64,000 nt of DNA, taken from NCBI GenBank assembly GCA_964187785.1, contig OZ076415.1, forward strand, positions 55,924,001 through 55,988,000, written 5' to 3'. This stretch comes from Amphiscolops sp. MND2022 (lineage: Eukaryota). Position 1 is the first letter of the stretch, and every line of letters begins with the position of its first letter. Below, piece by piece: positions 11,501 to 60,400 of this stretch. The position numbers were made by a program, and so were the translations under genes. Under the pieces are notes generated by a model, which searched no databases, was not told the DNA's origin, and was given only the letters and a program-made list of their open reading frames with translations.

Positions 11501-14500
11501 CTCAATTCCTCTTTTATTGGAAAACCTTTCAGAAATTAATTCTTTCTACTATAAAACTTTTCCTCTAGTTTCTGGAAAGCCAGAGCTTCCTTCCGGCTAG
11601 GGTTGACCATCGTCTGATGCAAGTTAATTAGCTCTACAGGCTCTGTAATATCTCTTCTGGTTGAACCATATCTCGAAGAGAAACCCACAAGACTGGATGC
11701 TCGTGGAACGTCTTGAGCAGGAGCGCAAAGTATTGCCCGTGAGTTGGTCAACTAGAAATCAGTTCAGTTAATCCTTTCGTTGTGGGTGTTCTCTGGGCAG
11801 ACACACCCCATCTTTACGGCAGAGGCACTTCCTGGCATATCCAGATGCAAGTCCTCTTCACCATTCAGCCTCTTCAGAATAAGATTCTGGAATCTTCTCT
11901 CATTCTCTGGAATGCCAGAGTGGTCCGCCAATTTGTTTTAATTAGTTGTTGACCAAAGGGTCAAAGAGCTTCGGCGAGAACACTTTCGGCATTGAGACTT
12001 TTCGGCTTTATGAGCCTTTTTTTCCATTACGATATAATGCCGCAACGAACTAGCAAGATCTTGCTAGTCTGATTAACAGCCAATAGAACCGCGTTATTAT
12101 TTCTGATACGCGGTACGAGTTTTGCTCGTTACACTGTGTGATTTGGCGTTACGCGTAGTGATCAAACTACAGCTAATGACTACTTTACACTCTCTACAAT
12201 TACGTACTTTGACTGGTTTCCACTTCACACACGAAGACGGAAATTGATTGTTTTACACTTTAACCTGGTACACAATTTGACTGGAATTCACTTTCAAAGT
12301 ATTCACGCATGTAATTATATAAATTAGTCAAATTAGTGTACATGTAAACCAGTCAAAGTGAATAGTGTGAAAGTCAACCTAATTACCGACTGCAATTACA
12401 ATGTGAAGCGTTTTTGTTAAGTAAGAAAGCAATACGATGTATCGTTTCTTTGGTGTAAACTAGTCAAACTTTGATCACTTTCCCCGTTTTCAATGAATGA
12501 TATTTCTAAGTACTCGAAAAGTGAATTCTAGTCAAACATTGACTAATTTACGTGGTAGATAGCTCTAAGTACTCGAAAAGTGAATTCTAGTCAAACGTTG
12601 ACTAATTTACGCTTTATACACGTTACGGAATTGAGCCAATGGTAGGTTGAAATTCTTGACTGGTTTCCACTTTTCTCTAATTACGCTCAATGACCAAAAT
12701 CCGCAATTTCTAATTACACTGTGCATCAAAATTGACGATGAACACATTGCATGATTTCATGCTGTTTGACTAGATTAGGTTCGTTCTCGTTTTACGGAAA
12801 AGACACTTTACACTTGATGATAAATTCCACTTTTGCGGCATTTGTATCGTACTGTCGAAATTTTTTAAATGTCCCCAAATTTGAACTTTTTCAAATGTCC
12901 CCAAAGAGTCCTCCTTTCATTTTTTTGATATTTTGCAACAGAACGAATGTTAAAAATCCCAAAGGGTCCTTTTTCATACTTTTCGGCACTTTGAGACTGT
13001 TCAAAATTCTCATTTTTAAAAATATTTCTGCTTTAGCAGGAATATTATTGTAACCTCAAACTTTCTACTTTTTTTCAGTACAATTTTTTGGACGATACTG
13101 AATAATTCAGATATTTTGTTCGGCAGTGACTGTAAGCGTGGGAAATAAATTTCTCAAGCTGCCGACAACAATTCAATTCTAGTGCGATGGAACGAGCGAG
13201 TGGTAATTATCCATTCGTATGCTGACGTCATTGAGATGAAGCGAGCGAATGTTCGCAATTGTGCTTTCGTTGCCCCGAGTTATTGAGATGAAGCGAATGA
13301 GTGTTAATTATTCGTTCGTTGAGAGCTTCGCCTGCATTCAAATGCGAATGCGAAACTTCGTCTACGCTTAGTAGTTATATTTTCTTTAGTCCGAGAAGAA
13401 TTAAAGGCGGTGTAAACTTGTACAGTGATTACATGTAATTGTGCGCTAAATAATGATTAAACAAGAGTGCATTGGTATTCCAGATATGATTCTTTTATTA
13501 ATGAATTTTTTGTTTCAAAAAAATAAAGATTAAAGCAGAAATAGTACTGAGCCCCGGAGGGCCCTATTTTTTGAAAAATTTTTATTTAAAGACTCCTCTT
13601 TTTTTGTTTTTTTTTTCAAAAATTTATAATGTCTACAAAAGGTCCACCCTTCTCTTTGTTTGATATCTTGCAAAAAATCCTAACGGGTCCCTTTTTTCAG
13701 ATTTTTCGGCACTATGAGATTGCCATTAAAATTTCTCATTTTTGTGTTTTTCGAAATTTTTTTATTAAAGAGTCCCCCTTCAATTTTTGGAAATTTTGCA
13801 ACAGAATGGATGTTAAAAAATCTCAAAGGGTCCCCTCTTTCACACTTTCCGGCATTGTGACATTTTTCAAAAGGAATAACTTTCGTGTTAAAATTAGGTT
13901 TTCTCAGGTCCGGCACCCTATATCCGATTTTTGTTGTTTTAAAAGACCGGTGTTTTTTCTATGCGACTTTTTTTTAAAAATTGTTTCACAGAAGCCCCTC
14001 CTCAATTTTTGCCAGAAACGAAACGTTTTGCGAGAGTTAAGGACTCCTCAAGGTTTTTGGCACTATGCGACTTACCGGAGACCATCAAAAATTTTTTCGA
14101 AAAATTTCGAATTTTTTTCCTCAATTTTCTGTTTTTTAAAAGGTTTTTCGTTGAGAAAGATGCGTTTTTTGCTGTTTTCAGTTGGGGAAGAATGGTTTTC
14201 GAGACTTATGGGTATCCTTTCGGGTATTTTTTGGCGCTGTATGTTGTAAAATTGATGAAATTTTAATGTCCTTTTACCCTTGGTTCTCCTTATGATATTG
14301 CTTATTTGGTTTTCTTCAAAAGTTCGCAAGTGTTTGCGAAGCACGGCTTCGCCTCTGTGTATTTTATGGGCTCTAATAAGTTTTGCAATAAATTAGGCAA
14401 GCTTTTATTTTGAATAAATTTCTTCATGAGTTTTCTTAGCCAGCCCTGATCATGATGTTCGATGTCAAATTCGTTGTTATAGCTTGAGCTGGACGTTCTG

Positions 14501-16571
14501 AATAAAGCCAGTACCGATATCAATGTTTTGGAGAAGTCATTGGAAGAAGAAAGACGGAGCTATGACCAAACTTTTGCTGAAGTCACTCAAAAGTTGAATT
14601 TCCTTCAAAGCAAATTAAAATCAGCCATTGAAAAGGCTCGGACATATTATGATCTGAAGGAGAAATTCAAAACGGTTCGTATGATCAGTACCTTTCTGAC
14701 TGATTAGTTTGGTCAGCATATTGTACAAAATATTGATTCATAATTGAGAAGCCAAGTTTTTATCACAATGATAAATTGCACTTACTGATTGCCCTGCATT
14801 TGTTCTAATCCGTAACGTTTGCGTGTAATCGGCGATCAAAAATAATTCAGCGAGAAATTCCCTCAACTTTATTGCCCGTTTATTCTCAAATATTTACTCC
14901 ATGAAATCCTTCACAATTTACTGCTGTAAACCCTATTTTTAGTCTGTGTGTACTTGCAATTACTACTTCACCCCGACGAGAATTGAAATATGAAAAAAAT
15001 GAACGTCATAGCTGTGATTGTTCCGGAGTTGAAGTTCTCTCAGCGTCCTCCCATTTTTTGTGTCCCATCTATATCATTTGGTTAATCGAATAATTTTGAC
15101 AGATTCGGTTCGACAAATCAGCTGATGATCTTAGCAGACAAACCGTGTATTAACCGATTTTTCAAACAGATGGTTAAACCATTATGTAAATCTCAGATCC
15201 CTGGTTCGGACCTGAATTCGCATGTTCCGAAGCATTTGTTTGTCGTTCAGGCACAAGCAGCGGCTCAGACCGCAGCCAAGCGATATGACCGTGCCATCTC
15301 TTCACACCAGGCAGCCCAGCAGATGGTGTCTGTGGCGGAAGTCGGCTTCAAGAACAGTGCCAGAGCTGCTTCCAGTCTAGCTAATGGTGGAGGTGGTGCT
15401 GAGACTTCTTCCGCATCCTCTCATCATTCTTCCAGCTCAAGTGACTCTGGTTCCAACTTCCAGAGTAAACAACAAAAAGGTCATTCTTTTTCTGTGCCAG
15501 AAATGCATTGCATGTACATGTTTTGTTAAGTCATCAATGAGCGCTGATGTATATGGCTGAATAATTTCATAGTCGGTTTCTGTAGAACTTGAAATGGAGA
15601 GAAAGGTGTTCAATGCGCTCCTTTGCTTCATAATTGGGAAAACTGTTATTCTGCAGTTAAGACCCATTTCATTCTCCGTTTAGTTTGCTGCTGTTCATGT
15701 TAGAAGTGATTGGTGTACTTTACAGGACCCTCGTTGGGTGAGCAGCGCAGTAGTGGGGGGTCATTCGATCTTGCGTGGCAAGAGATGCTGAACGTGGCAG
15801 TGGCCAAAGTGAACCTCGCTGAACGAGAACTTGCTGTGACTGAAGCAGAACACCAGGCCAAGATGCTTAGTGTTGCTGAAATGGACACACAGCTCAAGCA
15901 CCTCTCCAAAGAATTCAAAGGATCCATTAAAAAGTCCAAGTTGGTGCTCATTTCTTGTCCACTTGTTGGTAAACGCGAGTGTCCGGAAAACTTTATTGGG
16001 ATTAGAAGCATCGGCGTATGGAAACCTAATGCTCCAGAACTAATTTGGTTTCTTTAAAAATTAAATGTCTTTATTTGGCCTTGGCTAGATATAATTCAGA
16101 AACACTTTTCGAAAATCCGATTTTCGTTCCTTATTCGCATTTCATGTGCAATTTGAGGGCGGTTATTGTACAGATTACTTTTTTCTTGAACATTTCCTGT
16201 GAGTTCATTTTACAGCCAACTTTTTTCTTGTTTTTAGTGATTAATGTGTTTTAGGCCCTACTACGAAGTAAAATCGATGAGCAATTTTCAATTCGAAGTT
16301 AGTATGTATTCTGGAAACCGTCTGGGCTGTTTCGAACTATGTTTGATATGCTGTGTGTTTGCAGGAGCAATTACGCAGAATAAAGCACATCGAGAGCAAG
16401 ATCAGTGAGAATAAGCAGAAGTACGCCACTGCTCTACGCAACCTGGAGGCCATCAGTGAAGAGATCCACTTCCGAAGGGAGAGCAGATTGGGGCCCAGGG
16501 GACAAGGAGTAGGGGCTGAACATGTGGACGATGACGTTGACCCATCACTGCATCCAGGGATGTTGAGCTAA
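8501..16571 (+). CDS. SH3BP5: SH3BP5/Sab-family coiled-coil protein (Rab11-GEF family), multi-exon
   Basis: Exons 8501-8569, 14483-14674, 15251-15479, 15726-15939, 16255-16297 and 16365-16571, all with AG/GT and compatible phases. Product: ..EDLDPRIQ|LELDVLNKASTDIN..AIEKARTYYDLK..FDLAWQEMLN..SIKKSK|PYYE..YATALRNLEAISEEIHFRR, matching the SH3BP5 motifs DPRIQ, WQEMLN, KSKPYFE and LxNLExISxEIH. Could be SH3BP5 or SH3BP5L type. Confidence 0.88.
9072..9246. mobile_element. Tc1/mariner(pogo)-like MITE
   Basis: TA-cagtggaagccgcttaaatgggacgc ... gcgtcccatataagcggtttccacgg-TA: 26-bp imperfect TIR with TA on both flanks. Confidence 0.75.
10214..11089 (+). mobile_element. 5'-truncated RLE-clade (CRE-like) non-LTR retrotransposon: zinc knuckle plus restriction-like endonuclease
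   Basis: Uninterrupted ORF: EKGDSGWLNALPL..FRDGLALRYG..CACGEPFEMSHALHC (CCHC)..RHNEIRD..VEIEP..ARLDI..FFDVK..KERKY..FSPLVFATTGG. Homology starts at about 10275 and no RT domain is present. Confidence 0.85.
11230..12030 (-). pseudogene. Heavily decayed gag-like ORF with possible CCHC knuckle remnants
   Basis: Minus-strand frames give MEKRLIKPKSL.., C-R-R-(x)-G-E-F-G-H-K-T-T-Y-C (about 11440, needs frameshift/deletion) and WCGRC..C..C (about 11270). Many stops; recognition is tentative. Confidence 0.3.
12190..12690. repeat. Low-copy repeat region with ttgactggtttccac/tagtcaaa motifs and a tandem duplication of about 58 bp
   Basis: ctaagtactcgaaaagtgaattctagtcaaac[a/g]ttgactaatttacg occurs twice (about 12507 and 12565). 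ttgactggtttccact occurs at about 12209 and 12657. Confidence 0.5.
13021..13570 (+). mobile_element. HINE-like family B, copy 1 (nested in family C)
   Basis: Starts with the hairpin aatatttctgct-tt-agcaggaatatt and ends taaagcagaaatagt + gccc-cgga-gggc + T-run. Near-identical to 45205-45746 apart from an 11-bp insertion (taaatttctca). Confidence 0.8.
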
Positions 16572-16819
16572 TAGATAGTGAAATAGAATATTGAACGAAA
16601 TTTGTTCATTTGAGCATTTCAGTTGAAATTTCCAATTATGTTCGAAATTGGAGAGATATTCACTGATTTTTAATTGGAGTCATGCTTGCACAACAGTGTT
16701 CTACCTTCGCTCGGATTCTCATCAGTTAAAAACGCATTTTGATTTCTGTTTCCCGAATTAGAGGTGAAGTTTATTAATTTGTACCCGCTAACATCCTTGA
16801 CTGTCATGCAGAAGATAGT

Positions 16820-18092: not shown

Positions 18093-21000
18093 ATGGCCTT
18101 GGACAAGTGCAAGCTTGTTTTCAGAGGAGTTCCTCTCGATATCAGTGAGGTCAGTTTACAGAATATTAATTACTCTTTTGGTCAATCTTTTCGAATAAAA
18201 CGTCCTGGTTTTTGCTTGGCTTTGAACATTAACTTTGTACGTCTATGACTTGATAATGAGGTAGCTCACATGAAAAATTCTGCCTGAAATACCACTGGAG
18301 TTGGCGATGATAACTAAACGTGATCCTCATAACTTCGAGCTGAAAATCTTGACAGGTCTCTGAAAGGTTTTAAAAAATGAAAACAAAAATTCTCGTTGAA
18401 AGACATCTTTTCCATTTGAAATATTTTCTCAATTGAAATTCTTGCTTTGTGGCCAATTTCTCAAACATATTCAGCTTGGAAGATTGTTGAGCTTTCCGGC
18501 TCGTTAAAAGGACAACCCAAAAAGAAAAAATCTGTCCTTTCAATAATTGTCTTCATTTAGCGTATGACTTAAGTTGGGATGTCTCTCCGGATAAAACCCG
18601 GCCAATAGTTGATTCTGCTTCTATTTTAGAACGATTTCGTGAATTTCATCAAGCATCAATCGGGAGTAACGCCGAGAAGCGTCAACTTGGCCAAGTTCAC
18701 AGTCAACCCGACCAACCAAATGGGGTTAGTTTGTCACTTTTATAATCCTAGCTTCGTCTTTTAGAGCATTTGCAGATGACGTCAACCATCCGCCGAAAGT
18801 CTGGTGATAGATTACTCTCTGAAACAGTATCCGCCTTGTGCTCTCTGACTATTTCTTTGAAACTGTTGAAGTACTTGCTTAAACCTTCTGTCTGCAAACT
18901 TGATACTAAAATCCTGGTTGAATGTTTGTTTTTTTTAGAAAGCGCCGTGAAACAAATGGAGAAAGGTATCATTTAACTGTATCTTCAAAACTCATATTTA
19001 GGTTTCTTGACTGTCGAAATTATGTGAAAACTGAAAAAATCTGCTTGATTAAAATATTTCAATTCCTGAGGTGCGATTTTCATAGGTTTTCCGTTCATTT
19101 TGCCATTTTTGGTTTTTCAAATATTTAAAAAAAAATTTCGTTAAAATGTTTCACCTGACGACCATGATAAAATGTTCATCACGCCTGTGATATTTTATCT
19201 AACTCAGCGAGTCACAATTCGTTGTGTCTATTCAAGTAACACAGCCATAGTCCAAGGGGTGCATTCATTCAAAATTAATAAGTTTGCGTTTACGCAAAAT
19301 TTAAAAAAAGTAAAGTCTGGTTGGAATTGGACGTTTCACTCCGTTAAGTTGTTTTTAAATTGATTTAATCCGAGAATTTATATTGAAAGGATAGGCGAAT
19401 TTTCATCTATAAAAAGATGTTTGGATTTTTCTGATTTGTTTTTACAGTTTCAGATATATTACCGAGACTACAATGATAGCATTACGGGTTTGGCTTAAGC
19501 CTCGCGGTTTCTTACCTCACGGTTTGATATATCTTTGTGCCACTCTTAGCTCTGAATGTGCCTATTTCCCGATGAAACGTGATACAAATCGGCTTAACAT
19601 ATGGTTTTTGGTTATAACCGCTTTTCATGACCTGGGTGAAGTTTTGTCTGCACCAGTAAATGATGTAGCATCGTTTTTTGTCAAGTTTTCTTCAATGTAA
19701 TGCCGGATTATTTGCTGCTAGGAAGCCATTTATTTGGAAGGATATACAATAATATAAGTTAACAGAAGTTTATTAGACTTATGAATATTTCATCCAATCA
19801 GGGCAGAAAATGAGCTTAAGCAGCTCTTCGAGTTTCTGCCCACATCAAAAAAGTTCCGAATTTTTGTTGAGTTACAGAGAATTTGGCGAGTTACTCAAAC
19901 GCTTGATATCTTTGCGTATCCCTGTCTTTGAGCCAGTTTATGCTTGCCGTAATCTATTTTCAACCGATTTCGATTCAATGACAGTCCGACTGTAGGGGAT
20001 AGTCGCTTTTTGCTCCTTCTAGTATAATATGGATGATTACAAGCTGTATTTAGTGAACTGAGAGGTGATTCCATTCTCAATTGTTTGAAAACTTCTGCGA
20101 AAAGAAAGCTCCATTAGGTATATTTCGAATACAGTCATAATTTTGTTCCGTTCAAAAATATATCCAACAGTATCGTACTTCTTTCTGAAAAAAATAGCCC
20201 GTTTTCTTCGTTGAGCCTTTTCAATTTTATATAGATTGTCTTTCGCTTCACTCCCATAAGTCAGTATTCCATGAGAAATTGATTTACCAAACGAATTGTA
20301 GAACATTAAAAGGAATTTTATCGGATAAATTTCGCGAATTTTATAAATCATCCCTCTGATTTGATTCACTTTACGATATGCTCAATCTGATCTTGAAAAA
20401 GTAGTTTTTAGTCGGCGCTTCATGAAGTGAAACGCGACTATTATAGTGACTTTTTTCTATCCACACGAACTGACCAAAATAGTTCTTAAAAGTTCTACAA
20501 AATATTATTGCACTAAATTTCACCATTTGGCCTAGTGAACTGAACCAAAAAAGTTTTTCCAGTTTCTCCGCGTAACATACCATACCGGGCGAGACCAAAG
20601 GGTCCCCCTTTCATTTTTTCTCGGCACTGCGAGACTTTTCTTTCGAAAAAAATTTTCCCCAAAGGGTCCCCCCTTCAATTTTTTGCTGTTTTGGGTCAGA
20701 ATGGATGTTGGAAAATCCCAAAGGGTCCCCCCTTACAGTTTTTTTCGGCACTGAGATTTTTTCCGAAAATAAAATTTTCCCCTTGGATATGGCGCCGACT
20801 TGGGCCGGTCCCGGCTTGTTTTTTCTATTTTACTGCTCAAAGTTGTTTATTCGATCCAATTCCATTTGTAAAAAACATTGATTTCAGGGGCCAGCTTTCA
20901 CCATAGAATTATCGTCTGCAAAGATGAATATTTTGCTACTATTTCCAATATAACTGGGCAAATCATTGATATAGACTAACAAGCCGAGAACGGCCAAAGT

Positions 21001-24000
21001 CGGCGCCATATCTAAGGCTCAAAATTTAAAAGGGGGACCCTTCGGGCTTTGTGAAACTCCAGCTGGTTGCAAAAAATTTGAAAAAGATTTGAAGGGGGGA
21101 CCCTTTGGAGACATGAATCCCTTTGCGATTTTTTGACATCCATTGTGTTGCAAAATATCGAAACAAATGAAGGGGGACCCTCTGGTGCAATCCAAAAAAC
21201 TTCAAAAAAAGTGCTGAATAAAAGTGGGGCTAAGGTGTGTTTTCGAGGTTGTGGACGTCTGTTTTGTTTTTTCTTTTCGTTTTGGACGCGCTTCTGAGGT
21301 TGGAGTTGTTGAGGTTTGAAGTTGTTGAAGTTTGAGGTTGTTGAACAAATGAACAAAAAAGTGGACCTTTCGTGTCTAAAAAAAACTACCCAATATAATA
21401 GTCGGGCACATTTTCTACTAAAATGCGCCGACTAAAAACATGAAAGGTCCTAAGATCGATCCTTGATGCACGCCAGTATTGATCTGTAGTTCATCAGTCT
21501 TATCGTTAACAGTCTCTATATATTGGTATCTATTGGCTAAATTGTCTATCAAAATTTCAAAGATTGGTCCTCTGTAACCATAGGCATATATTTTATTCAA
21601 TATCGATGACCTGGGGTATCGAACGTTTTCTGGGGAACGATAAAACACGCTTGACCCGTTGACTTTTGTCAATTTTTTCTCTTATGTCGTCAGTTACAGT
21701 TCTGATTGCATGAACGCACGAGTTTTTTTCGAAACCCAAATTGCTCCAATGCAAACAATTTACTTTTTACGGAAAACTGAACCATGCGTTTGTACAAAAG
21801 TTTTTCAAAGATTTTGCTGATAGAACATAAACTTATCATCCTGTAGTTCTCTGGAAAAGTTTTATCTCCTTTTTTGAAAATAGGAACAACCTTCGCTAGT
21901 TTCAGGAATTCCGGATTTTCGAGATGCTCATATTAATAGCTCCACTCAGATATTTCTCGATTTCTGGGGAACAGTGTTTCAGCATTTTGTTGCTCAATCC
22001 CTCGTGACCCGTCCTTTTCTTACTTTTAGCGCGATTATTATTTGTGCCACTTCATTTCGTCACAGTAAGTGAGTACCATTGTCTTTTGAAAATTTGGTAC
22101 GTTCACTAGGCTATCGTATCCTGGGACTTCTGCTGATGGGATTCCTCCGATGGATGTGAAATATTAAGTTTTTTGATGTCTGGGATGACATTTTTGGGTT
22201 CATCTTTTGCCACTTGATATTTCAGTGTGTGGTATATGGTTTTACTGGAGGGGTTAAGTCCGGGTTTTTTGTAGTTACAATCTCGCTTTGCATTTCTAAA
22301 TAGTGATGTAACTATATTTCTTTGTCTCTTGTACAAATCCTTGTTACTTGTACAGATCCCTGTTTCATGTTTTTTTTGCTTGTAGTTTTTTCATGTAATA
22401 TATTTCATGTCAGGTAAGAGACACCTGCCGAAGTGATATTTTCAACTTGAGATCTACTAGGAAGCATTCTCTGGCAACGTTATCATTCGATTATAACGTA
22501 TTTAGTTGAAATGGTTTCAGTTTTCGTCGAATTATATGTGAAGGAAGATTAAGGTCGTCCCCGGTTTCTATGTATTTGATTTAAACTTTTTTCGTAGAAA
22601 TGAAATAATTAAAAATAAAAAAACTGAACAACTACAAGTAGAACGAAAACATTTCGAGTAAAAATAACAGGACACTTTTTCATTTGAACTGTCTCTTTCG
22701 TTTCAAAATACTGTGCGATGTTTTTTTGAACTTCGAAAGGGGCCATTAGCTATGGTTTCTGTTAACCAGCATTCAGGGAGTTTTCAAATGTGACTTGAAA
22801 TCTGTTTCTGTCTTGCAGGTTCGTGGAGTTCGACAACGAGAGAGATGCTGGGATGGCTCTGTGCAGCTGCATGCAGGCTGAGTACCTCGGTCACACCATC
22901 ACAGTGAGTTATTTGAAAGATAAACCGAAGCAGGAAGAGTCGACTGCCCATGATCACAGATCCGACTCACAACCACCTCACAACCAGTGATGACCATTTA
23001 AAATAAAACACTGCAGTTTAGTTTCGTTAGCAAGCATTTGTAGTAACGCACAAAAGCACTGGCGTGAGTGTAGGTTATTATGGTATAAATGTATGGTATA
23101 AATAAAGAATTTAAACCCCTTTCAATGGAAGTTTGATATCTATAGAAAATCACCCCTTGGAAGGACCTGAATCTGGAAAGTGTTGAACCAAGGCTCATGA
23201 CATGTTATCTCATTATTGAGTGCTGTCGGCTGCGTTCTGGAGGCTTCTCTCCATTTTCCTCATTTTTCTACCATAAACCATTGGTCATCATTAACAGAGG
23301 TGGAAGACAAAGATTTCAACCTAATTCAAGGCCTGTTACAAACAACCCACCTTTTGCTCCCGTCACGGAGAGCCAGCCAAACGCGCAAAGTGAGTATCGA
23401 ACATAGGAAAAAGTAGTTCATGCAATCAGTTGACTGTAGAGCTCAATTGCGTCATTCAAAGTTGGCAATGAAATGCCCGGAATAAATGGTCATATATGTT
23501 CCTTTGCTCAACTTCGTAGAAATATCTTCGGAATCTACTATCTTTGTTGTTTAGGACAAGTTCAGCGATTAAACAATGAGGAGAATTTCAAGTTGTGTGT
23601 CTACCAAGTTGCCAAAGATGCTGACAAAGTTAGTTCTAACAGTATATGAGTCACGCTCACTCAAACATCTAATCCATCACCGGATGACTTCTTGAGTGTT
23701 GAAAATAAGTTTTCATTTCCCAACAAAATTGAACTCTACTGAAAAACAAGACGGGAACGTCTAAAGTCGGCGCTATATCTAAGGCTCAAAAAGCGCAAAG
23801 TTTTTAAAATTGTAAAAGGGGGGACGATTTCGGCTTTCCGAAAATCCAGTTTGTTGCAAAATATCAAAAAAATGAAGGAGGGCCTTTCGAGACATTTAAA
23901 AAAATTCGAAAATTTTTTTGTAGAAATTTTTTCGAAAAAAAAATGAGAATTTTGAAAGTCTCATAGTGCCGAAAAATTTGAAAGGGGAGACCTTTTGGGC

Positions 24001-48059: not shown

Positions 48060-48095
48060 GTCATGTGTTGCGAAGCACCGCTTCGCCTCTGTGTT
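48060..48095 (+). mobile_element. Isolated family C 3' terminus
   Basis: gtgttgcgaagc-acc-gcttcgcctctgtgttaa, the same hairpin and tail as at 14336 and 53521. Confidence 0.55.
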
Positions 48096-48897
48096 AATGT
48101 CAAAGTTTGGACGTGGTCGCTTTGGACACTTTAAACACCATAGGTCATGAAAAATGAAATATTGCATCATCAAGAAGTGAGTTTCCTTGAAGTTCTTTTT
48201 TGAATTATGACTGATGTCCTAGATTAGGTCTCAGAATGAATTGCAAAGGCTTATGTTTTTCTTCTCAGTGGAGACATAATTCTTCTCGGTGGTTCGTTAT
48301 TATAAAACCGTTTTTGTTTGTTGAAACTTCTGACATTTCAACATTATATTTGAATTTATTTTCATTGATGAATTTATTTTCGTTTCTTTTGTAGTCATTA
48401 TTTACTTGAATTATCTTCATTCTCGTCCATTGAATATTCAAGTTACATATAGACTTGAATAACTGGCTAGCGTCGTTGAATCAGTGTTATTTTGCTGGTT
48501 AAAGTTGAAAACAAATCTTGCCGTGGGTTAATGATTGTCTAATCGCAAATTTCCACGGCGTAGACTAAAACGAAGAAAACACGTTCCAAAACCAATGGTG
48601 AATTCGGAAAAACTGAACTGAAATACGGTTAGGCAGAGGATTATAAGCTTTTGGAACAGACTAACAGAGCCGGAGAACATTTTCTCTAACTTGATCTTGA
48701 ATAATTAAGTTATTTGATCAGCAGTACAAATGGAACTCTAAACATGAAAGCGTTTTTTACATTGTTTTCGAACATGTGGAATTGATATCTAGAAACCGGT
48801 TACAACAATTTATGAAGAAGTCGCCGGGCAATTGTCTTGCTGCGGCATCAGCTCCAATTCGATCACTGACATATGTCGCACATACAGACATAAACTA

Positions 48898-49655
48898 CAG
48901 TAGCGTTCTAAAATATCGCAACCTCATAGCATAAAATGGCAAAATTCAAAACCAAGTATCTCATAAACTGTCTCGAATACAAAATTTTGCCAGCTAGGAA
49001 AGTTTCTTAAAATTTTATCTAGTTTACAAAAATGTTTGTTTGAAATTTCTACGACCGTTACCAAAAAAGTTGGAGATTGCAAATTTTAGTAAATTTTATT
49101 CAAAATTTGAGTTTTTTCGAAAATTGAGTAACTTAGAATAAATTTTTTTGGATTTTTTTTCATTGGGAAACTTCCTATAATTTCCCGAACCTACTGAATT
49201 GTTTTGATCGAGAATTTTTTTCGAATCAGAAAAATTACACTAAATTTTGTGTCTATGAGCACTGAAGTACATGTATTAAGATAGGCTATAAGAATTGTAT
49301 TTAGAAAATTGATGATTTTTATTTGAAATCGAAAAAGTTTTCAGATCAAATTATATCAGCATCCTCAGGAGATTTAGGGGCAAATGATTCACTGAAAATT
49401 TTTCAAAAATACATGTTCAATTTTGTGAAAATCCAGAAAAAGTACAAATTTGATTAAATTTTGTCAAAATTTCCAATTTCTAACTTTTGTAATTTTTGTC
49501 GCAGAAATTTCAAACAAACTGTTTTGTAAACTAGATAAAATTCTAAGAAACTTTCCTAGCTGACACTTTTCCGTATTTGTGACAGTTTTCAAGAAAATTG
49601 GATTTGAAATTTGCAATTTTAAGCATTGGAGTTGCGATATTTTAGAACGCTACTG
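48898..49655. mobile_element. Tc1/mariner-like MITE with long TIRs
   Basis: TA-cagtagcgttctaaaatatcgcaac ... gttgcgatattttagaacgctactg-TA. The inverted homology extends well over 100 bp (ctaggaaagtttctt..ttttatctagtttacaaaa). Confidence 0.85.
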
Positions 49656-50564
49656 TACAGATAGTTACATATCAATCCTCAACAAAAAAAGATGCCATTT
49701 TTATGGGTAACTTGGGCCGCAAGCTCGGCGTTACCTGTGATTAGAGCTAAGTTTGGACAGCTCAGCTTTGGAAAAGTGCCCTTTCTGCACCGTACAAAGG
49801 AAAAACGATGAATACAATCTATTACTATGCAACCACTTTAAAGCGGATCGCCAGACTAACGGATCCAAGTTATTACAATAAACCAAATCTTTCTAAACTT
49901 GACCAGCTTATGAATTGCAAATCAAAAAGTCGCGAAATTTTGCTTCTGGTCCAAAATTCTGGAATATTGCCGCAACATTCTTAATGAATGACTACTTTGA
50001 TTTCTTTTCATTATAGTTTATACGCTCATCATAAATTTCTGCTCACTGCTTGTTGGAACATAACAAGTTTCTAGTTTTCAGTTGACTTTGGTGGTTCATT
50101 TTTAGTTGAAAACTGACCGTTGCAGTGGTTTTTTTAGAGACCAGCGAACTGACATATTTCTATAAGCATTTCTCTGAGTTTCTGTACTCTCCCAAATTCC
50201 GTTATTTCCGAAGTTAACTGCTGTTTCCTAGGAAGAAGGCGGAGGTTCGGAAATATTGCGATTTATCCGAATTTTGGACGTTTTATCCAAATTAAATTGC
50301 CTTTCTAATTATATCCGAAGTAATAGATGTTTCTGGTGGGAAAAGATGAGAAATATCTGAGTTTTTCGATATTTCTGTTAATGAAAGCAAAAAAGCTTTT
50401 CTAAAGCCAAAAAAAGTCCCACTTTGTGTTTTTTGTTACTGTGAAATTGGGAATTGATGCAAAAGAGAAATCTTGAAGCTTTGAAGTACTCTTGCTCTTT
50501 TTGAGCCAGCGCGGTGCCGACTTATGCTGTTCCAGGCTTGTTTCTCATACATATATGAAAACTG

Positions 50565-50864
50565 AACAAGTCGTGAACGGCTCAAGTTGGCGCCATATCT
50601 AAGTATCAAAAATCCAAAAAATGTTATAGTACTGGAAACTTGACCCTAAAGCATTACTTTGGACCCAAATTTTGTGAAAGTTTGGGGAAAAATTGAGTTA
50701 TACGAGAAATAAAAACGTTTTATCCGAACTTTGAAGACGTTATTACTGAACATTGAAAACGTTGCATCCGTACTTTGAAAGAACTCTGTAAGAAAAATGG
50801 ACCACATAGAGTGAGATTGTCAGCTGAAAAAATTACCCATTGCAATAGTGGGGCCGACTAAAAA
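50565..50864 (-). mobile_element. Diverged family A copy, facing another family A 3' end at 50505-50542 (+)
   Basis: aacaagtcgtgaacggctcaagttggcgccatatctaag ... gccgactaaaa; gccgacttatgctgttccaggcttgtt lies just upstream. Confidence 0.6.
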
Positions 50865-51496: not shown

Positions 51497-54400
51497 ATGA
51501 ACGTTGATGGCGGCCCAGTTGGATCTGCCTCAGGTGCTACCGGTATGCCCCCCGTCACTTCTGTCACAAACCTCGATGCTTACTCCTACCAACCTGAGAA
51601 GAGCGTCCTACCACCCCACACGTCTGCCTCCCGATATGAATACCCCCAGTCACACAGCACCTTCGCCAGACCCTGGCAGAGCAACGATTGGGTGAAACCC
51701 ACTGTGGAGAGCAGTCGTTCACCTTCTTACAACACCCAGCAAGATGTACCCTCTGCCTATTTCAATGGAAACGGAACTAACTTCTCTGGATCGGTGCCTC
51801 AATCCAGGGATGGCCCTGACTTATAAGAAATATACATCAACTAGAAATTGTTGAATTTAAATCCTGTGTTTCTAGAGATACCTTGTTTTTGGAAGGGCAC
51901 TTGAAACTCTTGCAAAAATTCGTCAATTAAGCTAGAAAATCTTTCATTATTATCTTATCAATGTTATAGTTTTTTACACTTGCGATAAGCAAGTGTTATG
52001 GGAAAGGCGGGCGCTTTTTTTCCGGGCGACAACTCTCTCATTTCACGCGGCAAGTCGCACAATTCACGCGCTCGTGGTCTAGTGGTGAGATGTTTGCTTT
52101 TCAACCCTGGCAGAGGTTTCATGTTCGAACCTGTGCGTATGCGCTAATTTTTTAAAAGTGTTCCGAAGCAGGTTTTCGCTTTTTTCGGCACTATGAGACT
52201 CCCCCTTTTTGGCTTTGACTTTCGAAAATTTTTTAATGTCCCCAAAGTGTCCTTCCTTCAATTCGTTTGATATTTTACAACAGAACAAATGTTAGAAAAT
52301 CCCAAATGATCCCTCTTTTCAGATTTTTTGGCACTGAGACTGTGAAAAATTCTCATTTTTTTCGAAAATTTTTCAAAGACTCCAATAGGTTCCCCTTCAA
52401 TTTTTTTTGAATTTTTGCAACAGAATGGATGTTAAAAAATTTCAAAGGGTCCCCTTTTACAGTTTTCGGCATTGTGAGATTTTTTAAAAGGAAGAAAAGG
52501 AAGAATTTTTGTCTTAAAATTAGGTTTTCTCAGGCCCAGCAGGCTATATCCGATTTTCGTTTTTTTTAAAGACCGGTGTTTTTTCTATGCGACTTTTTTT
52601 GAATTCGTTTTTATCGAAGCCCCCCTCAATTTTTAGGAGTCGGAAAAAATTTTCGACTACTTATGCAATCGTGTCGTTCTTGTTTTTTTTCTCCCGATCT
52701 TTTCATGAAAATTTCAAGTTTCTCAAAAACTGTCCCTACGATTTTCATAAAATTTTGCAGTCATTCTACACCCAAAAGGGCCCCTACGTGCTGAAAGGCA
52801 TCAAAATCGTATGACTGGAATGTGAGAAACATAGCCAAAATTAGCCCAAAAATTTCTTCGATTTTCTCAAAAACTCTTCATACGATTCGAACGAAATTTT
52901 CTACAGTCATTCTACCCATATTAAAGACCTATATGTGCAATGGCATCAAAATCGTATGGCTGGGATGTGAGAAACAGCCAAAATTAACCCAAATATGGCC
53001 AAAAAACAGCCATTTTTTGACTTTTATTGATTTTCTCAAAATTTCTATGCGATTCGAACGAAATTTTCTAGTCATTCTACACCATGATATGGTCCTATGT
53101 GTGCAATTTCAATAATCTCGTATGACTGGGATTCGAGTGAGTCAGAAGACTTATTTCTAATTGGTTTCCATGGAAGCCCCTTGAAACGAAACGTTTTGCG
53201 AGCATAAAGGGACTCCTCAGGGTTTTCGGGACTATGTGACTTACCAGAGACCTTCATCAAAAATTTTTTCGAACATTTTCGAGAAAATTATTTTCCTCAA
53301 CTCTTTTTCATTTCTGAAAGGTTGTCGGTTGAGAATATGGGTTTTTGCTGTTTTCAGTAGGGGAAGAATGGTTTTCGAGGCTTATGCGTATCCCTTCGGG
53401 TATTTTTTGGGGCTGTAAAATTGATGAAATTTTAACATTATTGTCCTTTTACCCTTGGTTGTCTGTATGATACTGCTCTTTGGTTTTCTTTTGAAAAGTT
53501 CACAACTTTCTTAAGTGTTTGCGAAGCACGGCTTCGCCTCCGTGTTAAACGTTGTATATCAAGGAGTATGTCGACTCTAAATCGATAGAATGCACAAGAA
53601 ATTGAAAGCCATCCTTGTGACAAACAGTGAGCACCAAACAATGCAGACAGCACTTCCCTCTGTATCTTCCCAGAGAGCAACAGCAATGAGTGACTTTAAA
53701 CCTCCCCGAATGCTTCACAACGATGGAGGACAAACATCTAGTATCCTACCGCCTTCCACAACTAACTTCGCTCCCGTTCAGCCTCCGCATCCAGTGATGA
53801 CCAAAACATTAAATTGTACCCTTAAACTCCTGAAAGTTGGAGTATGATTACTTTGTACTTCTTTATTCAATTTTTGCGTTGACGGGAATGTGGAAACGGA
53901 ACGAGAATCATTTTTGGCTGATTCACGACCTGTTTATATGAGTTGTTCCAAAATGATGGCTTTTTCAATTCGAGTTTCATTCATTGATGTAAATCATCTT
54001 TGTTTTTACACATTGAGTTTCTACAACTGAAGTTACCATCGTTAATTGGATTGTGTATCGTATTATTGATGAATATTTTCAAAATTTAAAGGTGTATACA
54101 TCATTTACTCAAATAGGTTTTTCCCAAGTTTTTCAGTTTCACTAAATCATATCAATAAAGAACAAATGTCTTTCCGAGAGCTTGCTATTTTGGTGTACCG
54201 TATATCGTATACAAATAGCTGGTCATGACGAATCATCTATTACATCAGAGCATGCCACCATGTGAACCGTACTACCCCATGCCGCCGCCGCCGCCTCCCC
54301 ATCAGTATCCCCCCTCTGGGCCCCCTCCTCACTCTGTGCCCTACCCAAATTACTCCTACTACCCTGCACAACACCCACCTCACATGACCGCTTACCCTCA

Positions 54401-57400: not shown

Positions 57401-60400
57401 CTAGGTGCCATTGGCGGCATATCGTAATAATGCCTATGCTCTTTATTGTTAATCTAAAGACAACAATCCGGGAATGGCCCAAGTTGACGCCGCCCAGACA
57501 AGGCTCACGAAGCGTTAATTTCATCAAATGTTGTCGGTATCTGTTTTTGAGAGTTTCGTGAAATATCAGTGTCGAAATTGGTCAACTCAATGTCCGGTGT
57601 TCCGATGGCGGTTTCTTGGTTCTTATCTACTTCTGTGATTCACGGAAGATTTTACGGTAACCGCTGGTGTAAACCTTTTGGACTGTTTTTGTACATGCAA
57701 GGCGGAGGTTAGTAAAGTGGACCTTCTATTGTTCCGCGGCCCGGAGAAAAGGACCAGTCATTGGAAAACGCACTTTTTAGTCGGCTCTTCATGAAATAAA
57801 ACGCGACTATTATAATGGTTTTTCGTATTTTTTCAGTCCTTTCGAAGTGGCCATAGAAATTTAACAATGCCCTCAGGAGGCTCCCTTTCATATTTTGACA
57901 TACCGATATGATAAAAAAATTTAAGGGTTATTTTCGGCGCTGTGTTACTTTTCGAAAAAATTATATTTCCAAGGAGGTCCCTCTTTGTGTTTTTGATGTA
58001 TTAGTTGGAAACAAGCCTTTTGAGCCAAAGTGCCGCTACTTTGAATTTTGCCACCTTGCGACTTTTTTTGGAATATTTTTTTCCTAACAAAAGGGTTTTT
58101 GCTTCGTTTTTCCAAGTGAAAACAAGCCGGGAACGGCCCAAGTCGGCGCCATATCTAAGGCTCAAAAATAGCAAAAGGACTTCAAAGTGTCAAGTATTCT
58201 CTTCTACAGTACCCACATGTGGAAAAAATAGAAAAAGACATTTTTTCGAAGTTTTTATCAAATTTTTTGGTCTCCGATAAGTCGCATAGTGCCGAAAAAT
58301 GTAGAAAATGTAGAAATAGTGCCTCAAAAAAGCCTAATTAACCTCTATCTCAAGTGCCAGTAGAAGTAGTGTGACATTTAGTGTTAGTTCAAGTCAGCTT
58401 AAATAGCTTATAAAATCTGTCACTTCGTTGGTCTTAAAAAAGTCACTATAGTCTGCGTTTTTCTACGAAAAGTGCCGACTAAAAAAAGTTACTACTATAG
58501 TCTGCGTTTTTCTACGAAAGGCGCTGACTAAAAAGCCCTTTCAAGCCGAAAAGACCTATCTTTGTTTTTTTCAGCACTGTGCGTTTGATAAAACGGATCA
58601 AATATTTCAATTTTTGACAAATTTTGTACAAATGCTATTTTTGTACTGTTCACAGTTCAACAACGAAATTAGCTACTTGGCAAATTCTTGTATATGTGCT
58701 TTTTTTCTTGTCTAAAGAGTCAAGTTTTCCAAATTTTTGCAAGTTTCGGAGGTTATTGGCTACGCTCGAACCGTAAGTACATGTCACTAAATTATCTCAG
58801 TGCTCATTTGGCGTCCTATTTAAAAAGCGCTGATCAAAATGTTTTTTTTTGTATCATTTTTGATTAAATCAATGTCATTCATAGTAAAAAGATATCGAAT
58901 GCCAAAAAACGTTTCTGCCTTTGCCCTGCAAGCACTAGTAATCATTGTCAACAGCGTCCAGAATTTCATTTTAATAAATAGTCATAAAAACTGATTGAGC
59001 GTAACAATCAGGGCCTCCGTAAAAATAATTGTATTGCAGTTATTTTCAATAAATAATTTATTTTTTGGTATTTTTGTAGTCCAATAATTTATTTTCAACG
59101 GAGCTTCAGGGAAATAATTGAGGGGCTCAAATGCACTTATTAGTCGGCGCATTTTAGAAGAAAATGAGCCCGACTATTACAGTGGCTAGTTTTTTTTTTT
59201 TCGTCAGATAACAGAATGTATGCGTAGTGGACACTTTTTACAGAACAGAACTACTAAACTAAAGTACTGGATCGGCAAACGGGGAGCGTATTTAAGATAG
59301 TGCAAAGGGTCCCCCCTTTCAGTTACTCCATTTTTATCGTAAGATACAAAACCTGACGAGACAATAGGGTCCCCCCTTTGAGTTTTTTTCGGCACTGTGC
59401 GACTTTTTTTCGAAATTTTTTTTGTCTCCAAAGGGTCCCCCCTTCAATTTTTTGCTGTTTTGCGACAAAATGGATGTTGGAAAATTCCAAAGGGTCCCCC
59501 CTTTCAGTTTTTTTCGGCACTGTGAGATTTTTTTTCGAAAATAAAAAATTTTCATCCCTTCAATTTTTTGATGTTTTGCGACTGAATGGATGGTGAAAAA
59601 CCCCAAAAGGTCCCTCCTTTCAGTTTTTTTCGGCACTGTGAGATTTTTTCCGAAAATTATGTTCTCTCCAAAGGGTCCCCCTTCAATTTCTTTGATATTT
59701 TACAACACATTGGGTGTTTAAAAATCCCAAAGGGTCCCCCCTTTCAGTTTTTCGGCATTGTGAGACTTTTTTTCGAAAATTTGTTTTTTCTCCAAAGGGT
59801 TCCTCCTTCAACTGCAACAAAAATGTTGACAATTTCGGAAGTGTCCCTCTTTTAGCGCGCCAGGGGCTCGCGCTAGCGGGCCCCGGCGCGCCACTCAGTC
59901 CATTTTTTTGGTTTTTCGAAAAAAAAATTCGATAAAATTTCGAAAAAAAAATTTTTAAGTTTTTTTCAAAAGTCTTTTGCGCTTTTTGAGCCTTAGATAT
60001 GGCGCCGACTTTAGACGTTCTCGTCTTGTTGTGTAAATTATTGACAATTAGGGGTCAGCTCGATTTCAATAGTGCGGCCGCATCATACATTGTTTCAATA
60101 ATTTAACCTATTGCAATTATTTATTTTTCATACCAAGTTAAGGAAATTAGGGAATAATTGAGGGGAAGACGTCAATATTATTGCAATTATTTTTACGGAG
60201 GCCCTGGTTACAATGCCACATTTGTATTGGAGACTTTCTTCATAAATTACATGATTGGACCGGGTCAGAAGCGTAATTTCTTGCGACATAGGTAGTGGAA
60301 AGGAGGAGGACGAAGATTCCAACGAAAGCCTCAGTGGCGACCAAGACAGTGAAGTGGAGAAGGTCAGACAGAAAAGCGGCTGGCTTGGCAAGCAGAGACG

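Follow-up and report, generated by a model that had tools for sequence, protein, structure and literature searches.

Background

Closest to the elements described here are Drosophila DINE-1/INE-1 and the HINEs known from Culex and from the mite Metaseiulus occidentalis (Thomas et al. 2014, PMC4067079), as well as the Pacific oyster's Cg_HINE families with their satellite-like repeats (Vojvoda Zeljko et al. 2020, PMC7492417). HLE2 (Helitron2/Helentron) is used in the sense of HELIANO (Li et al. 2024, PMC11417382), the paper that reports DUF6570 as the HLE2 marker, and FoHeli was described in Fusarium (Chellapan et al. 2016, PMC5148889). The published HINE/HLE2 criterion is a pair of inverted repeats of 11-18 nt, of which the left lies 2-5 nt from the 5' terminus and the right is subterminal.

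Here we describe three element families, A, B and C, in a 64-kb window (the whole stretch of DNA analysed) of the Amphiscolops sp. MND2022 assembly. Judging from their sequences and from those of larger elements in the same assembly, they are in all likelihood (probability roughly 0.88) three HINE families, i.e., non-autonomous Helentron (HLE2) derivatives, each moved in trans by its own Helentron lineage within the same genome. Autonomous driver elements with matching ends are present elsewhere in the genome for A and C, and probably for B.

Terminal structure and copy number

A first-pass annotation, made from the letters of the window, had proposed three sequence-unrelated families with one common Helentron/HINE terminal layout, comprising about 14 copies of A, two of B and two to three of C. 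Both the layout and the family sizes are borne out (Table 1). A has ten complete copies (300-894 bp) and four partial ones, B has two copies that are 94% identical, and C has one complete copy and two partial ones; overall, element sizes in the window run from 300 to 1580 bp. All three families share the order T-run, 5' inverted repeat in a hairpin, inverted copy near the 3' end, short stem-loop. "Sequence-unrelated" holds for the termini but not for the interiors, where A and C have a tandem repeat of ~120 bp in common.

Table 1. Elements and assembly gap in the window (positions are those of the window)
Feature	Position	Strand	Remarks
HINE-C 5' fragment	9844-10041	+	outside the interval annotated earlier
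HINE-C-type 3' part	12877-14360	+	interrupted by HINE-B copy 1; terminates in CGCAAGTGTTTGCGAAGCACGGCTTCGCCTCTGTGT
HINE-B copy 1	13013-13572	+	nested inside C-type element
HINE-A complete, 416 bp	20405-20820	+	5' TTTTTAGTCGGCGC, 3' GCGCCGACTTGGGCCGGTCCCGGCTTGTT
HINE-A complete, 461 bp	20978-21438	-	
HINE-A complete, 603 bp	23745-24347	-	
HINE-A partial	27193-27739	-	3' end and body; 5' side truncated
Assembly gap (N)	32062-32261	.	touches no element; between 27193-27739 and 33702-34463
HINE-A complete, 762 bp	33702-34463	-	degenerate 3' end (CTGGTG)
HINE-A complete, 481 bp	36900-37380	+	
HINE-A 3' end fragment	38653-38686	-	
HINE-A complete, 625 bp	40752-41376	-	head-to-tail with copy 41378-42066
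HINE-A complete, 689 bp	41378-42066	-	
HINE-B copy 2	45200-45746	+	surrounded by unique DNA
HINE-A isolated 3' end	50514-50542	+	
HINE-A short complete copy, 300 bp	50565-50864	-	
HINE-C complete, 1.58 kb	51971-53545	+	5' palindrome, tRNA-like stretch, 120-bp repeats common with A, 3' subterminal repeat and 7-bp hairpin
HINE-A isolated 5' end	57774-57823	+	
HINE-A complete	58121-58534	-	two stacked 5' ends (58487 and 58534)
HINE-A complete, 894 bp	59137-60030	+	several internal ~120-bp repeats

Every A copy takes the form TTTTT-AGTCGGCGC-loop-CGACT ... GCGCCGACT-T-(4-bp stem, 4-nt loop)-TTGTT, and the motif TTAGTCGGCGC, with at most one mismatch, matches the window 11 times against 0.21 expected. 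The A copies at 27193-27739 and 20405-20820 have 20 nt in common past CTTGTT. B starts with the palindrome AATATTTCTGCT-tt-AGCAGGAATATT and finishes with TAAAGCAGAAATA-gtactga-GCCCC-gga-GGGGC-CTATTTT, and C starts with ACACTTGC-gataa-GCAAGTGT and finishes with GCAAGTGT-tt-GCGAAGC-acg-GCTTCGC-CTCYGTGT. The inverted repeats are thus AGTCGGCGCC in A (10 nt), TATTTCTGCTTTA in B (13 nt) and ACACTTGCGA in C (10 nt), so B falls inside the published 11-18 nt while A and C are 1 nt under its lower bound. In each family, about five Ts precede the left repeat, the right repeat begins 29-42 nt inside the 3' end and the 3' stem-loop ends 5-8 nt before the terminus.

The 5' hairpins have folding energies of -6.2 to -11.1 kcal/mol (z of -2.8 to -7.0 versus shuffled sequences). 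At the 3' end, C has a 7-bp stem (z = -2.7) and B a 5-bp GC stem. The 4-bp 3' stem of A is supported by covariation and not by energy, which is not significant (z about 0): one pair is C-G in 13/32, A-T in 16/32 and something else in 3/32 (one a T-G wobble), with about 6-9% of A copies non-conforming at that position.

Genome-wide copy counts, suggested in the first-pass annotation as a check, were run on end motifs and gave ~53,700 for A, 1,200-2,400 for B and 2,400 for C, with 0 matches for the reversed patterns used as a control. By these counts the elements make up ~3% of the genome, and their share of the window is 15.7%. The wider proposal of the first-pass annotation, that Helentron lineages drive much of the intron content, is not supported as worded.

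Insertion sites and tandem arrays

The earlier reading had reported no obvious target-site duplication (TSD) and had named a defined-length TSD, as in cut-and-paste elements, as evidence that would count against it. We scanned 17 B copies and 12 A copies at all offsets and at lengths of 2-9, and found no TSD at any offset or length; the best results (at most 4/17 for B and 2/12 for A) were about equal to those of permuted flank pairs. Comparison of a nested insertion with its uninterrupted paralogue (the A copy at 58121-58534, minus strand) likewise shows entry at an oligo-T with no duplication. The earlier description of the targets as T-rich needs correcting for A, whose flanks show no particular richness in T once the constant TTTTT is passed.

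Tandem junctions contain 5 Ts, while single copies have 5+2 (A) or 5+4 or more (B). By this arithmetic A fits a simple T-T target and B does not, TTTT-T being the better fit for B. A local search with joined flanks gave no match, and B copy 2 has flanks that occur only once in the assembly. The data are thus consistent with, but do not prove, insertion between two Ts.

Head-to-tail arrays of A and of B have a single 5-T junction. Between the adjoining A copies at 40752-41376 and 41378-42066, the junction reads CTTGTT-G-TTTCT-AGTAGGCGC. The 3' ends of C are regularly spaced at ~2.05 kb and may form a C array; the one C junction read had no adjoining 5' end.

Short, non-coding elements with inverted repeats and a high copy number could also be MITEs of cut-and-paste DNA transposons, with the inverted repeats serving as transposase binding sites. 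We regard this as very improbable: the 3' repeat is subterminal and followed by a hairpin, making the ends asymmetric, head-to-tail arrays exist, and the full-length elements with matching ends (see below) encode Rep-helicase proteins, not DDE transposases. For such a MITE one would expect inverted repeats at the very ends of the element together with a TSD of fixed length, but here the right repeat lies 29-42 nt inside and there is no TSD at any offset.

Autonomous elements with matching ends

As the first-pass annotation had stated, the 64-kb window holds no autonomous RepHel gene: tblastn with four RepHel proteins as queries found no RepHel coding sequence there. Elsewhere in the genome, both ends of A and of C were found on RepHel elements, while for B the 3' terminus alone was found and the 5' end was not reached.

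The A driver is an 11-kb Helentron (C1:34704850-34715797) whose start and finish coincide exactly with the A termini. In at least seven Helentron copies, homology starts at query position 150 (TTTTT-AGTCGGCGCC) and stops at position 759 (CTTGTT), with mutually unrelated flanks; among at least four of the copies, identity over 5.6 kb reaches 99-100%. The element has ORFs of 376 aa and 2304 aa, the latter intact and encoding Helitron_like_N (Rep, 3.3e-17), PIF1 helicase (2.5e-25) and DUF6570 (8.8e-13) domains. A JAB/MPN match is weak (E = 2.7e-4, below the Pfam cut-off), and an AP-endonuclease match (Exo_endo_phos) is borderline (4.9e-5, 23.6 bits vs a Pfam cut-off of 24.5). Going by its sequence, this driver is young and intact. 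Five further sub-lineages all begin with the A 5' end, and one is 96.7% identical to window copies over the first 60 nt: the A copy at 23745-24347 matches, at that level, 5' ends upstream of Helentron Rep matches at C7:64223088 and near C13:1141 (L078, L082).

The C driver is a 14.2-kb USP-type Helentron (C7:53236035-53250245), in which C termini at positions 35 and 14245 of L032+L033 flank the USP, Rep and helicase ORFs. Compared with the window copies, its identity is 83-90% over the 5' 60 nt and 80-83% over the 3' 60 nt, and the C 3' end also occurs on two more RepHel copies, ~5 kb downstream. Protein domains are a USP-type deubiquitinase (UCH), DUF6570, Rep and PIF1 helicase. The endonuclease is recognised by homology only: the last ORF aligns with the C-terminus of the OTU-type driver (below), which can itself be aligned to the endonuclease region of the A driver. 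The copy examined is decayed and frameshifted.

This Helentron also bears on the tRNA-like stretch (GTGGTCTAGTGG ... GGTTCGAACC) that follows the C 5' palindrome, a feature that would suit a tRNA-derived SINE copied via RNA. Such an origin for C is highly unlikely, as ARAGORN and Rfam called no tRNA in the window, C has no TSD and no A-rich or simple-repeat tail, and the 14.2-kb Helentron carries the same stretch together with both C termini.

The probable driver of B, on sequence evidence, is an OTU-type Helentron with an intact ORF of 2244 aa and OTU, DUF6570, Rep and PIF1 helicase domains. Its C-terminal region is homologous to the A driver endonuclease, so here too the endonuclease is seen by homology alone. 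A B-type 3' terminus, without a HINE-B body, lies 1.75 kb past the stop of this ORF in the same orientation. It consists of the terminal 40 nt only, i.e., exactly the repeat, hairpin and T-run, joined to a unique 3' UTR, and its last 36 nt are identical to a HINE-B copy bearing the canonical 5' end.

Alternatively, B could be Helentron-like in layout but driven by something else (another lineage, an endonuclease-less Helitron2-type element or an extinct one), with the end beside the OTU-type element being a stray 5'-truncated insertion. The OTU-type element is single copy, and no B 5' end is present in the 8.8 kb upstream of its ORF. The subterminal repeat near it has only 9 bases identical to that of HINE-B (CTGCAGAAATA vs AAGCAGAAATA), and identity over the last 60 nt is just 77%. 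With ~15 RepHel lineages inspected, we estimate the chance of one such co-occurrence at roughly several percent, and the B 3' end ATTTT resembles Helitron2 and FoHeli ends (PMC5148889). We nevertheless consider a different driver unlikely, given the composition, orientation and 36-nt identity of the OTU-associated end. Moreover, the DNA upstream of the ORF enters a 217-bp tandem array that extends past the sequence examined, so the 5' end of the B driver may lie further out.

With the OTU-type Helentron as the probable B driver, the three driver proteins all carry DUF6570 and are pairwise only 24-36% identical. The lack of a fixed TSD and the presence of RepHel elements with matching termini therefore support the co-existence of several Helentron lineages in this genome, as had been proposed. 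A separate 1320-aa Helitron-like lineage lacks the ends of A, B and C in the ~7 kb to each side of it.

Proposed mode of transposition

Following the Helitron/HLE2 literature, Rep would nick one strand at the 5' end, the helicase would unwind 5' to 3', and the 3' repeat plus stem-loop would serve as the stop signal. The released strand would then circularise and enter an oligo-T (T-T) site without duplicating it. Each HINE family retains only its driver's terminal signals (T-run, 10-13-nt 5' hairpin repeat, 3' inverted copy and stem-loop). Arrays joined head to tail, a second 3' end found behind some drivers, and stacked 5' ends would result from missed stop signals and re-initiation.

Comparison with known systems

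Canonical Helitrons (HLE1) share with these elements a rolling-circle Rep-helicase transposase, a 3' hairpin and the lack of a TSD. However, A, B and C have no 5'-TC, no 3'-CTRR and no A-T target, and they end in CTTGTT, TATTTT and GTGT, respectively. We rejected HLE1 on these ends (A, TTTTTAGTC...CTTGTT; B, (T)AATATT...CCTATTTT; C, TTTTTACAC...CTCYGTGT).

The likeness to Drosophila DINE-1/HINE drawn in the first-pass annotation is sound, with the repeat, hairpin, stem-loop, T-string and no-TSD features all corresponding (PMC4067079). As in DINE-1/INE-1 and the mite and Culex HINEs, a subterminal inverted repeat lies a few nt from the 5' end and is associated with an inverted repeat or palindrome, which is DINE-1-like in A and closer to the palindromic mite type in B and C. 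Also in common with those HINEs are a 3' repeat followed by a short stem-loop, boundary T strings, central tandem repeats and autonomous Helentron partners with matching ends. The differences are that the end sequences are unrelated to published ones, the A and C repeats are 10 nt rather than 12-15 nt, and the 3' repeat and hairpin are nearer the terminus (repeat start 29-42 nt, hairpin end 5-8 nt). The partners here also add JAB/MPN-type (a weak match) and USP-type deubiquitinase domains to the known OTU type.

Oyster Cg_HINE elements offer a parallel for several families in one genome, each with its own flanks and central tandem repeats, some of the repeats being common to more than one family, and for probable oligo-T targets, no TSD and thousands of copies. 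No autonomous partner was tied to any Cg_HINE (PMC7492417), whereas here the A and C partners are matched end to end.

HLE2 and FoHeli elements share asymmetric terminal inverted repeats, a stem-loop past the right repeat, in some families a hairpin at each end, and head-to-tail copies consistent with a circular intermediate; their T-T or TTTT-T insertion sites may apply here too. The DUF6570 marker and the accessory UCH, OTU and Exo_endo_phos domains also agree with HLE2 (PMC11417382). There is no difference in kind. The accessory domains quoted from that paper do not include JAB/MPN, whose match here is weak (E = 2.7e-4). Because matching full-length drivers exist elsewhere in the genome for A and C, and probably for B, the three families do not represent a new kind of element; they are new, well-documented members of the established DINE-1/HINE, HLE2 kind.

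Copies of the three families in the window

The genome (1.07 Gb, an animal, 13 large contigs) contributes a window, C7:55924001-55988000, with a GC content of 33-44%, in which the motifs of three families of short non-autonomous Helentron (HLE2) derivatives, HINE-A, HINE-B and HINE-C, are genuine and far in excess of chance. With at most one mismatch, TTAGTCGGCGC occurs 11 times (0.21 expected), the family B 12-mer occurs six times (0.72 expected) and the family C palindrome twice (0 expected). By comparing the window with itself and pairing the ends, we recovered ten complete (300-894 bp) and four partial copies of family A, two copies of family B that are 94% identical to each other, and one complete copy, one 5' fragment and one 3' part of family C. 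These numbers agree with the first-pass annotation, which had counted about 14 copies or ends of A, two of B and two to three of C, and the C 5' fragment lies slightly beyond its range of 13021-60030. One B copy is nested within the C 3' part, and the three families together make up 10,019 bp, or 15.7% of the window. As had also been reported, no RepHel (Rep plus helicase) coding sequence was found in the window. The assembly gap touches none of the described elements, so continuity across it is irrelevant to the finding.

Termini of the three families and coordinates of the features described (window positions unless a contig, C, or an extracted locus, L, of the same genome is named)
Feature	Position	Sequence or remark
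Family A, 5' end		TTTTT-AGTCGGCGC(C)-loop-(C)CGACT
Family A, 3' end		GGCGCCGACT-T-(4-bp stem, 4-nt loop)-TTGTT
Family B, 5' end		(T-run)A-ATATTTCTGCT-tt-AGCAGGAATAT
Family B, 3' end		TAAAGCAGAAATA-gtactga-GCCCC-gga-GGGGC-CTATTTT
Family C, 5' end		TTTTT-ACACTTGC-gataa-GCAAGTGT
Family C, 3' end		GCAAGTGT-tt-GCGAAGC-acg-GCTTCGC-CTCYGTGT
B copies 1 and 2	13013-13572 (+); 45200-45746 (+)	copy 1 is the nested one
C 5' fragment	9844-10041	
Assembly gap	32062-32261	neighbouring elements at 27193-27739 and 33702-34463
SH3BP5-like ORF fragment (exon)	15248-15361 (+)	E = 1e-5
RNA recognition motif (RRM) ORF fragment	28964-29173 (+)	E = 3e-5
Duplicated 1.5-kb segment	1-1583 and 2993-4692	92% identity; second copy has about 123 bp extra, between 3064 and 3188
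Inverted repeat pair	48896-49116 / 49437-49657	221-bp arms, 81% identity
Inverted repeat pair	28228-28319 / 28565-28657	92-bp arms, 91% identity
Short tandem array	39272-39461	32-bp period, units 94-95% identical
Stacked A 5' ends	58472-58534; L079 437-540; L069 87-250; L048 134-230; L038 6425-6460	
Oligo-T after A 5' hairpin, struck repeatedly	58534/58487; L079; L048	
About 120-bp repeat (..caaagggtccccc..tttttcggcactgagac..)	20570-20780; 52220-52490; 59340-59810	central arrays of HINE-A and HINE-C
tRNA-like stretches	52060-52140; 9940-10010; L032 230-330; L034 1840-1875	GTGGTCTAGTGG ... GGTTCGAACC, and GTGGGTTCGATTCTC
A driver	C1:34704850-34715797	about 10.95 kb
HINE-A unit behind A driver	L034 1759-2229; L077	about 470 bp, 5'-truncated
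C-type (USP) Helentron	C7:53236035-53250245	L032 and L033
217-bp tandem array	C13:25898500-25900732	L084, about 2770-5000
GIY-YIG element	G000:C1:73780734-73790733	L031; hairpin arrays at 1170-1320 and 9080-9500
A head-to-tail array	C1:7576-10986	units of about 484 bp
B head-to-tail array	C2:5660577 onward	537-bp units
Spaced C 3' ends	C1:24546871 onward	regular spacing of about 2.05 kb

The SH3BP5 and RRM fragments indicate that the window overlaps host genes, and with at least two host gene fragments present it is plausible that several of the elements are intronic. The window also holds a duplicated segment, a short tandem array and two inverted-repeat pairs; the latter are unrelated to A, B and C and may be foldback or MITE-like elements.

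Terminal architecture

The layout proposed in the first pass (a 5' hairpin containing a subTIR, then a 3' subTIR and a stem-loop) was seen in all three families, with inverted repeats of 10 nt in A and C and 13 nt in B. The 5' hairpins fold significantly better than shuffled sequences (z -2.8 to -7.0), as does the 3' hairpin of C (z -2.7), while the 4-bp stem at the A 3' end does not. That stem is supported by covariation instead of folding energy: in 32 distinct copies its second pair is C-G (13 copies), A-T (16) or, once each, C-A, A-A and T-G, and a genome search whose pattern left the stem-pair positions free gave about six broken combinations, counted by eye, among the first 100 of its 53,668 matches. 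The families had been described as unrelated in sequence, which holds for their termini but not for their interiors, as A and C have a tandem repeat of about 120 bp in common.

Insertion sites

The reported absence of a TSD was borne out: in 17 B and 12 A copies, scanned at every offset, the flanks showed no duplication of 2-9 bp. The idea of T-rich targets fared less well: outside the constant TTTTT, the DNA around A is not notably T-rich. On contig C13, an inner HINE-A lies between GTGAC-TTTTTCCTG and AAGACTTACGAACTGACAG, and the corresponding site of an uninterrupted window copy at 58487 reads GTGAC-TTTTTT-AAGACCAACGAAGTGACAG, making it a paralogous empty site. The two together show that the oligo-T was entered without duplication and that the inner element ends in CTTGTT. 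Joined-flank searches among the extracted loci returned no paralogous empty sites. No second match to the left flank of B copy 2 exists in the assembly, which therefore contains no alternative haplotig for it.

In single copies the left side carries five Ts and the right side two (A) or at least four (B), and tandem junctions contain a single five-T run in both A (CTTG-TTTTT-(T/A)GTC, locus L071) and B (CCTA-TTTTT-AATATT). The A counts are exactly those that would be predicted if TTTT...CTTGT were inserted between a host T and T. The B counts would better fit a TTTT-T target, as given for Helitron2 (PMC5148889). Several complete A elements have stacked 5' ends immediately upstream, where the first 30-55 nt (repeat and hairpin) recur one to three times. 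This would reflect either preferential insertion into the oligo-T that follows the 5' hairpin or renewed initiation at the 5' signal.

Abundance and arrays

Genome searches gave 53,668 matches for the A 3' end (at most two mismatches), 1,185 for the B 5' 41-mer (at most two), 1,310 for the B 3' 37-mer (none allowed) and 2,394 for the C 3' 30-mer (at most three), with zero matches for each reversed control. A first look at family B by BLAST gave 2,387 candidates, the best 40 of which are 96-98% identical. Family A exceeds 50,000 copies (about 2.5-3% of the genome), and at typical lengths the three families come to roughly 3%. Both A and B form head-to-tail arrays. For the regularly spaced C 3' ends, the one junction read is followed by unrelated sequence with no 5' end, so a simple head-to-tail array is not demonstrated for C.

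Drivers of families A and C

The genome contains more than 150 Helitron_like_N matches belonging to several lineages, and RepHel elements with matching termini were found among them, end to end for A and C and at the 3' end only for B.

For family A, an A-type 3' end lies downstream of an intact 2304-aa RepHel ORF at C1:3471, in the same orientation. When the genome was searched with this driver's 3' region, other copies (99% identical) stopped exactly at CTTGTT (query position 759), and with its 5' region, copies began exactly five Ts before AGTCGGCGCC (query position 150). At the junctions of six copies the ends are constant and the flanks unrelated. Identity among four copies is 99-100% across 5.6 kb, and length varies among copies by internal duplications, not nested elements. 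Besides the 2304-aa protein, the driver encodes a 376-aa ORF for which Pfam gave no match. The 2304-aa protein matches JAB/MPN (weakly, 2.7e-4), DUF6570, Helitron_like_N, PIF1, Pif1_2B and Exo_endo_phos (4.9e-5, 23.6 bits against a cut-off of 24.5). The sub-lineages related to it (68-75% nucleotide identity) all start with the A 5' end, and one of them (L078, L082) is 96.7% identical over the first 60 nt to two window copies, 23745-24347 and 59137-60030. Behind some A drivers lies a truncated HINE-A unit that ends in a second 3' signal, 470 bp after the first. The driver copies at C10 and C3:394 include this unit, which suggests that the first stop signal was read through.

For family C, a USP-carrying Helentron 2.7 Mb upstream of the window starts with tttttACACTTGCgataaGCAAGTGTtatggg and has its 3' terminus, cGCAAGTGTttGCGAAGCacgGCTTCGCctctgtgt, 14.2 kb from that start. 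Identity to the window C copies is 83-90% over its first 60 nt and 80-83% over its last 60 nt. Same-strand ORFs between the termini match UCH, DUF6570, Helitron_like_N and PIF1, and the last ORF shows homology to an OTU-type Helentron protein in the C-terminal region of the latter, which aligns with the endonuclease region of the A driver. The copy examined is broken by frameshifts. A C 3' end in the right orientation also lies about 5 kb downstream of two more RepHel copies (C4:5549 and C1:49940345). Nine further RepHel lineages, scanned on their 3' side, yielded one more C-type end.

A candidate driver of family B

The B end was absent from the 3' sides of those nine lineages, and motif scans of about 15 lineages did not find a B driver. 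A relaxed BLAST of B against the extracted loci gave a 36-nt match in L037, on the minus strand of C13, representing a 3' terminus of B type, CTGCAGAAATAATACTGA-GCCCC-gca-GGGGC-CTATTTT, situated on the same strand as an intact 2244-aa ORF and 1.75 kb past its stop. About 1 kb of this distance is a nested pair of HINE-A copies. The encoded protein has OTU, DUF6570, Helitron_like_N and PIF1 matches, and its alignment with the A driver extends through the endonuclease region. Within the 3' untranslated region, only the last 40 nt recur elsewhere, matching hundreds of B ends at 93-100%; the remainder is single copy. At C2:8959854, a HINE-B copy with the canonical 5' 41-mer has 36 nt identical to the OTU-type terminus. 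The B-type 5' palindrome (TTTTT-AATATTTCTGC...GCAGGAATATT) was not found in the 8.8 kb upstream of the ORF, and we therefore regard the OTU-type Helentron as the probable partner of B only. Upstream of this Helentron is a 217-bp tandem array that continues beyond the stretch examined; highly abundant genome-wide, the repeat might be carried by a further HINE family as its cargo.

Other lineages were rejected as drivers. A RepHel lineage with a GIY-YIG domain (Rep, PIF1 and GIY-YIG in an ORF of 2372 aa in the L031 copy and about 2376 aa in others) is flanked by hairpin arrays of another kind, and A, B and C motifs are missing from its flanks. Its upstream array consists of tandem hairpins, ATCACTGA-TCGACGGAAAGCGTGG-TCAGTGAT, its downstream array of five hairpins, GGAA-TCGACGATGAGCGTGG-TTCC, and the loop motif TCGACG..GCGTGG is common to both. 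No A, B or C end was seen within about 7 kb to either side of a 1320-aa Helitron-like lineage, and scans of 10 kb downstream of the lineages of 2545 aa and 2603 aa gave no motif of the three families.

Internal repeats

The central arrays of HINE-A and HINE-C are built from a repeat of about 120 bp, which is also present in the 5' untranslated region of JAB/MPN-type Helentrons (L078-L082). The motif "aagggtccccc ... ttcggcactg" is common to these central repeats and the 5' untranslated regions of the A-driver sub-lineages, so the repeats seem driver-derived, and the satellite-like cargo of both families appears, from these sequence matches, to originate from the drivers. Separately, tRNA-like stretches occur near the 5' end inside HINE-C and the C-type Helentron, and another lies in the HINE-A unit that follows the A driver. 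Neither ARAGORN nor Rfam made a call on these stretches, which might be remnants of promoters or tRNA fragments that were captured.

Mechanism and comparison with known elements

In flies, mites and bivalves, HINEs rank among the most abundant repeats, often with no driver assigned to them. To our knowledge, how the transposase recognises the ends has been worked out for no Helentron. On a bolder reading, to which we give a probability of roughly 40%, the three deeply diverged Helentron clades of this genome, with JAB/MPN, OTU and USP deubiquitinases, would have private Rep-recognised ends and orthogonal HINE families, and at least the JAB/MPN driver would still be active. If so, the genome would be a natural set of matched Rep-terminus pairs from which end recognition in Helentrons could be read. 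One driver is intact in several near-identical copies. Such pairs would be material for testing recognition of the 5' hairpin and of the 3' repeat with its stem-loop, as well as cross-mobilisation. More than 50,000 family A copies can now be confidently classified, and rolling-circle transposition can account for the tandem repeats they have scattered. No principle is changed by the finding.

These HINEs and their Helentrons have termini in common, and the drivers encode Rep, helicase and endonuclease-like domains. By analogy with the Helitron and HLE2 literature, rather than from this window, Rep would nick at the 5' end, the helicase would strip off one strand, the 3' repeat and stem-loop would act as the termination signal, and a circular single-stranded intermediate would integrate at oligo-T. 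Bypass of an end and re-initiation could then give rise to arrays, extra ends and captured repeats. The Helitron steps follow Grabundzija et al. 2016, to the extent that this work is cited in PMC5148889, and the HLE2 steps follow PMC4067079 and PMC11417382.

The original interpretation as DINE-1/HINE-like elements stood up, as every defining feature of HINE/HLE2 that could be assessed was found. Two features depart from the published pattern in degree: the A and C repeats measure 10 nt, and the hairpins lie very near the 3' end. A literature search with the A repeat sequence returned unrelated papers only. The closest descriptions are those of DINE-1 and the mite and Culex HINEs (PMC4067079), and of the oyster Cg_HINEs with their satellite-like repeats (PMC7492417). 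The oyster study linked no HINE to a Helentron (PMC7492417), whereas two of the families described here are tied end to end to Helentrons.
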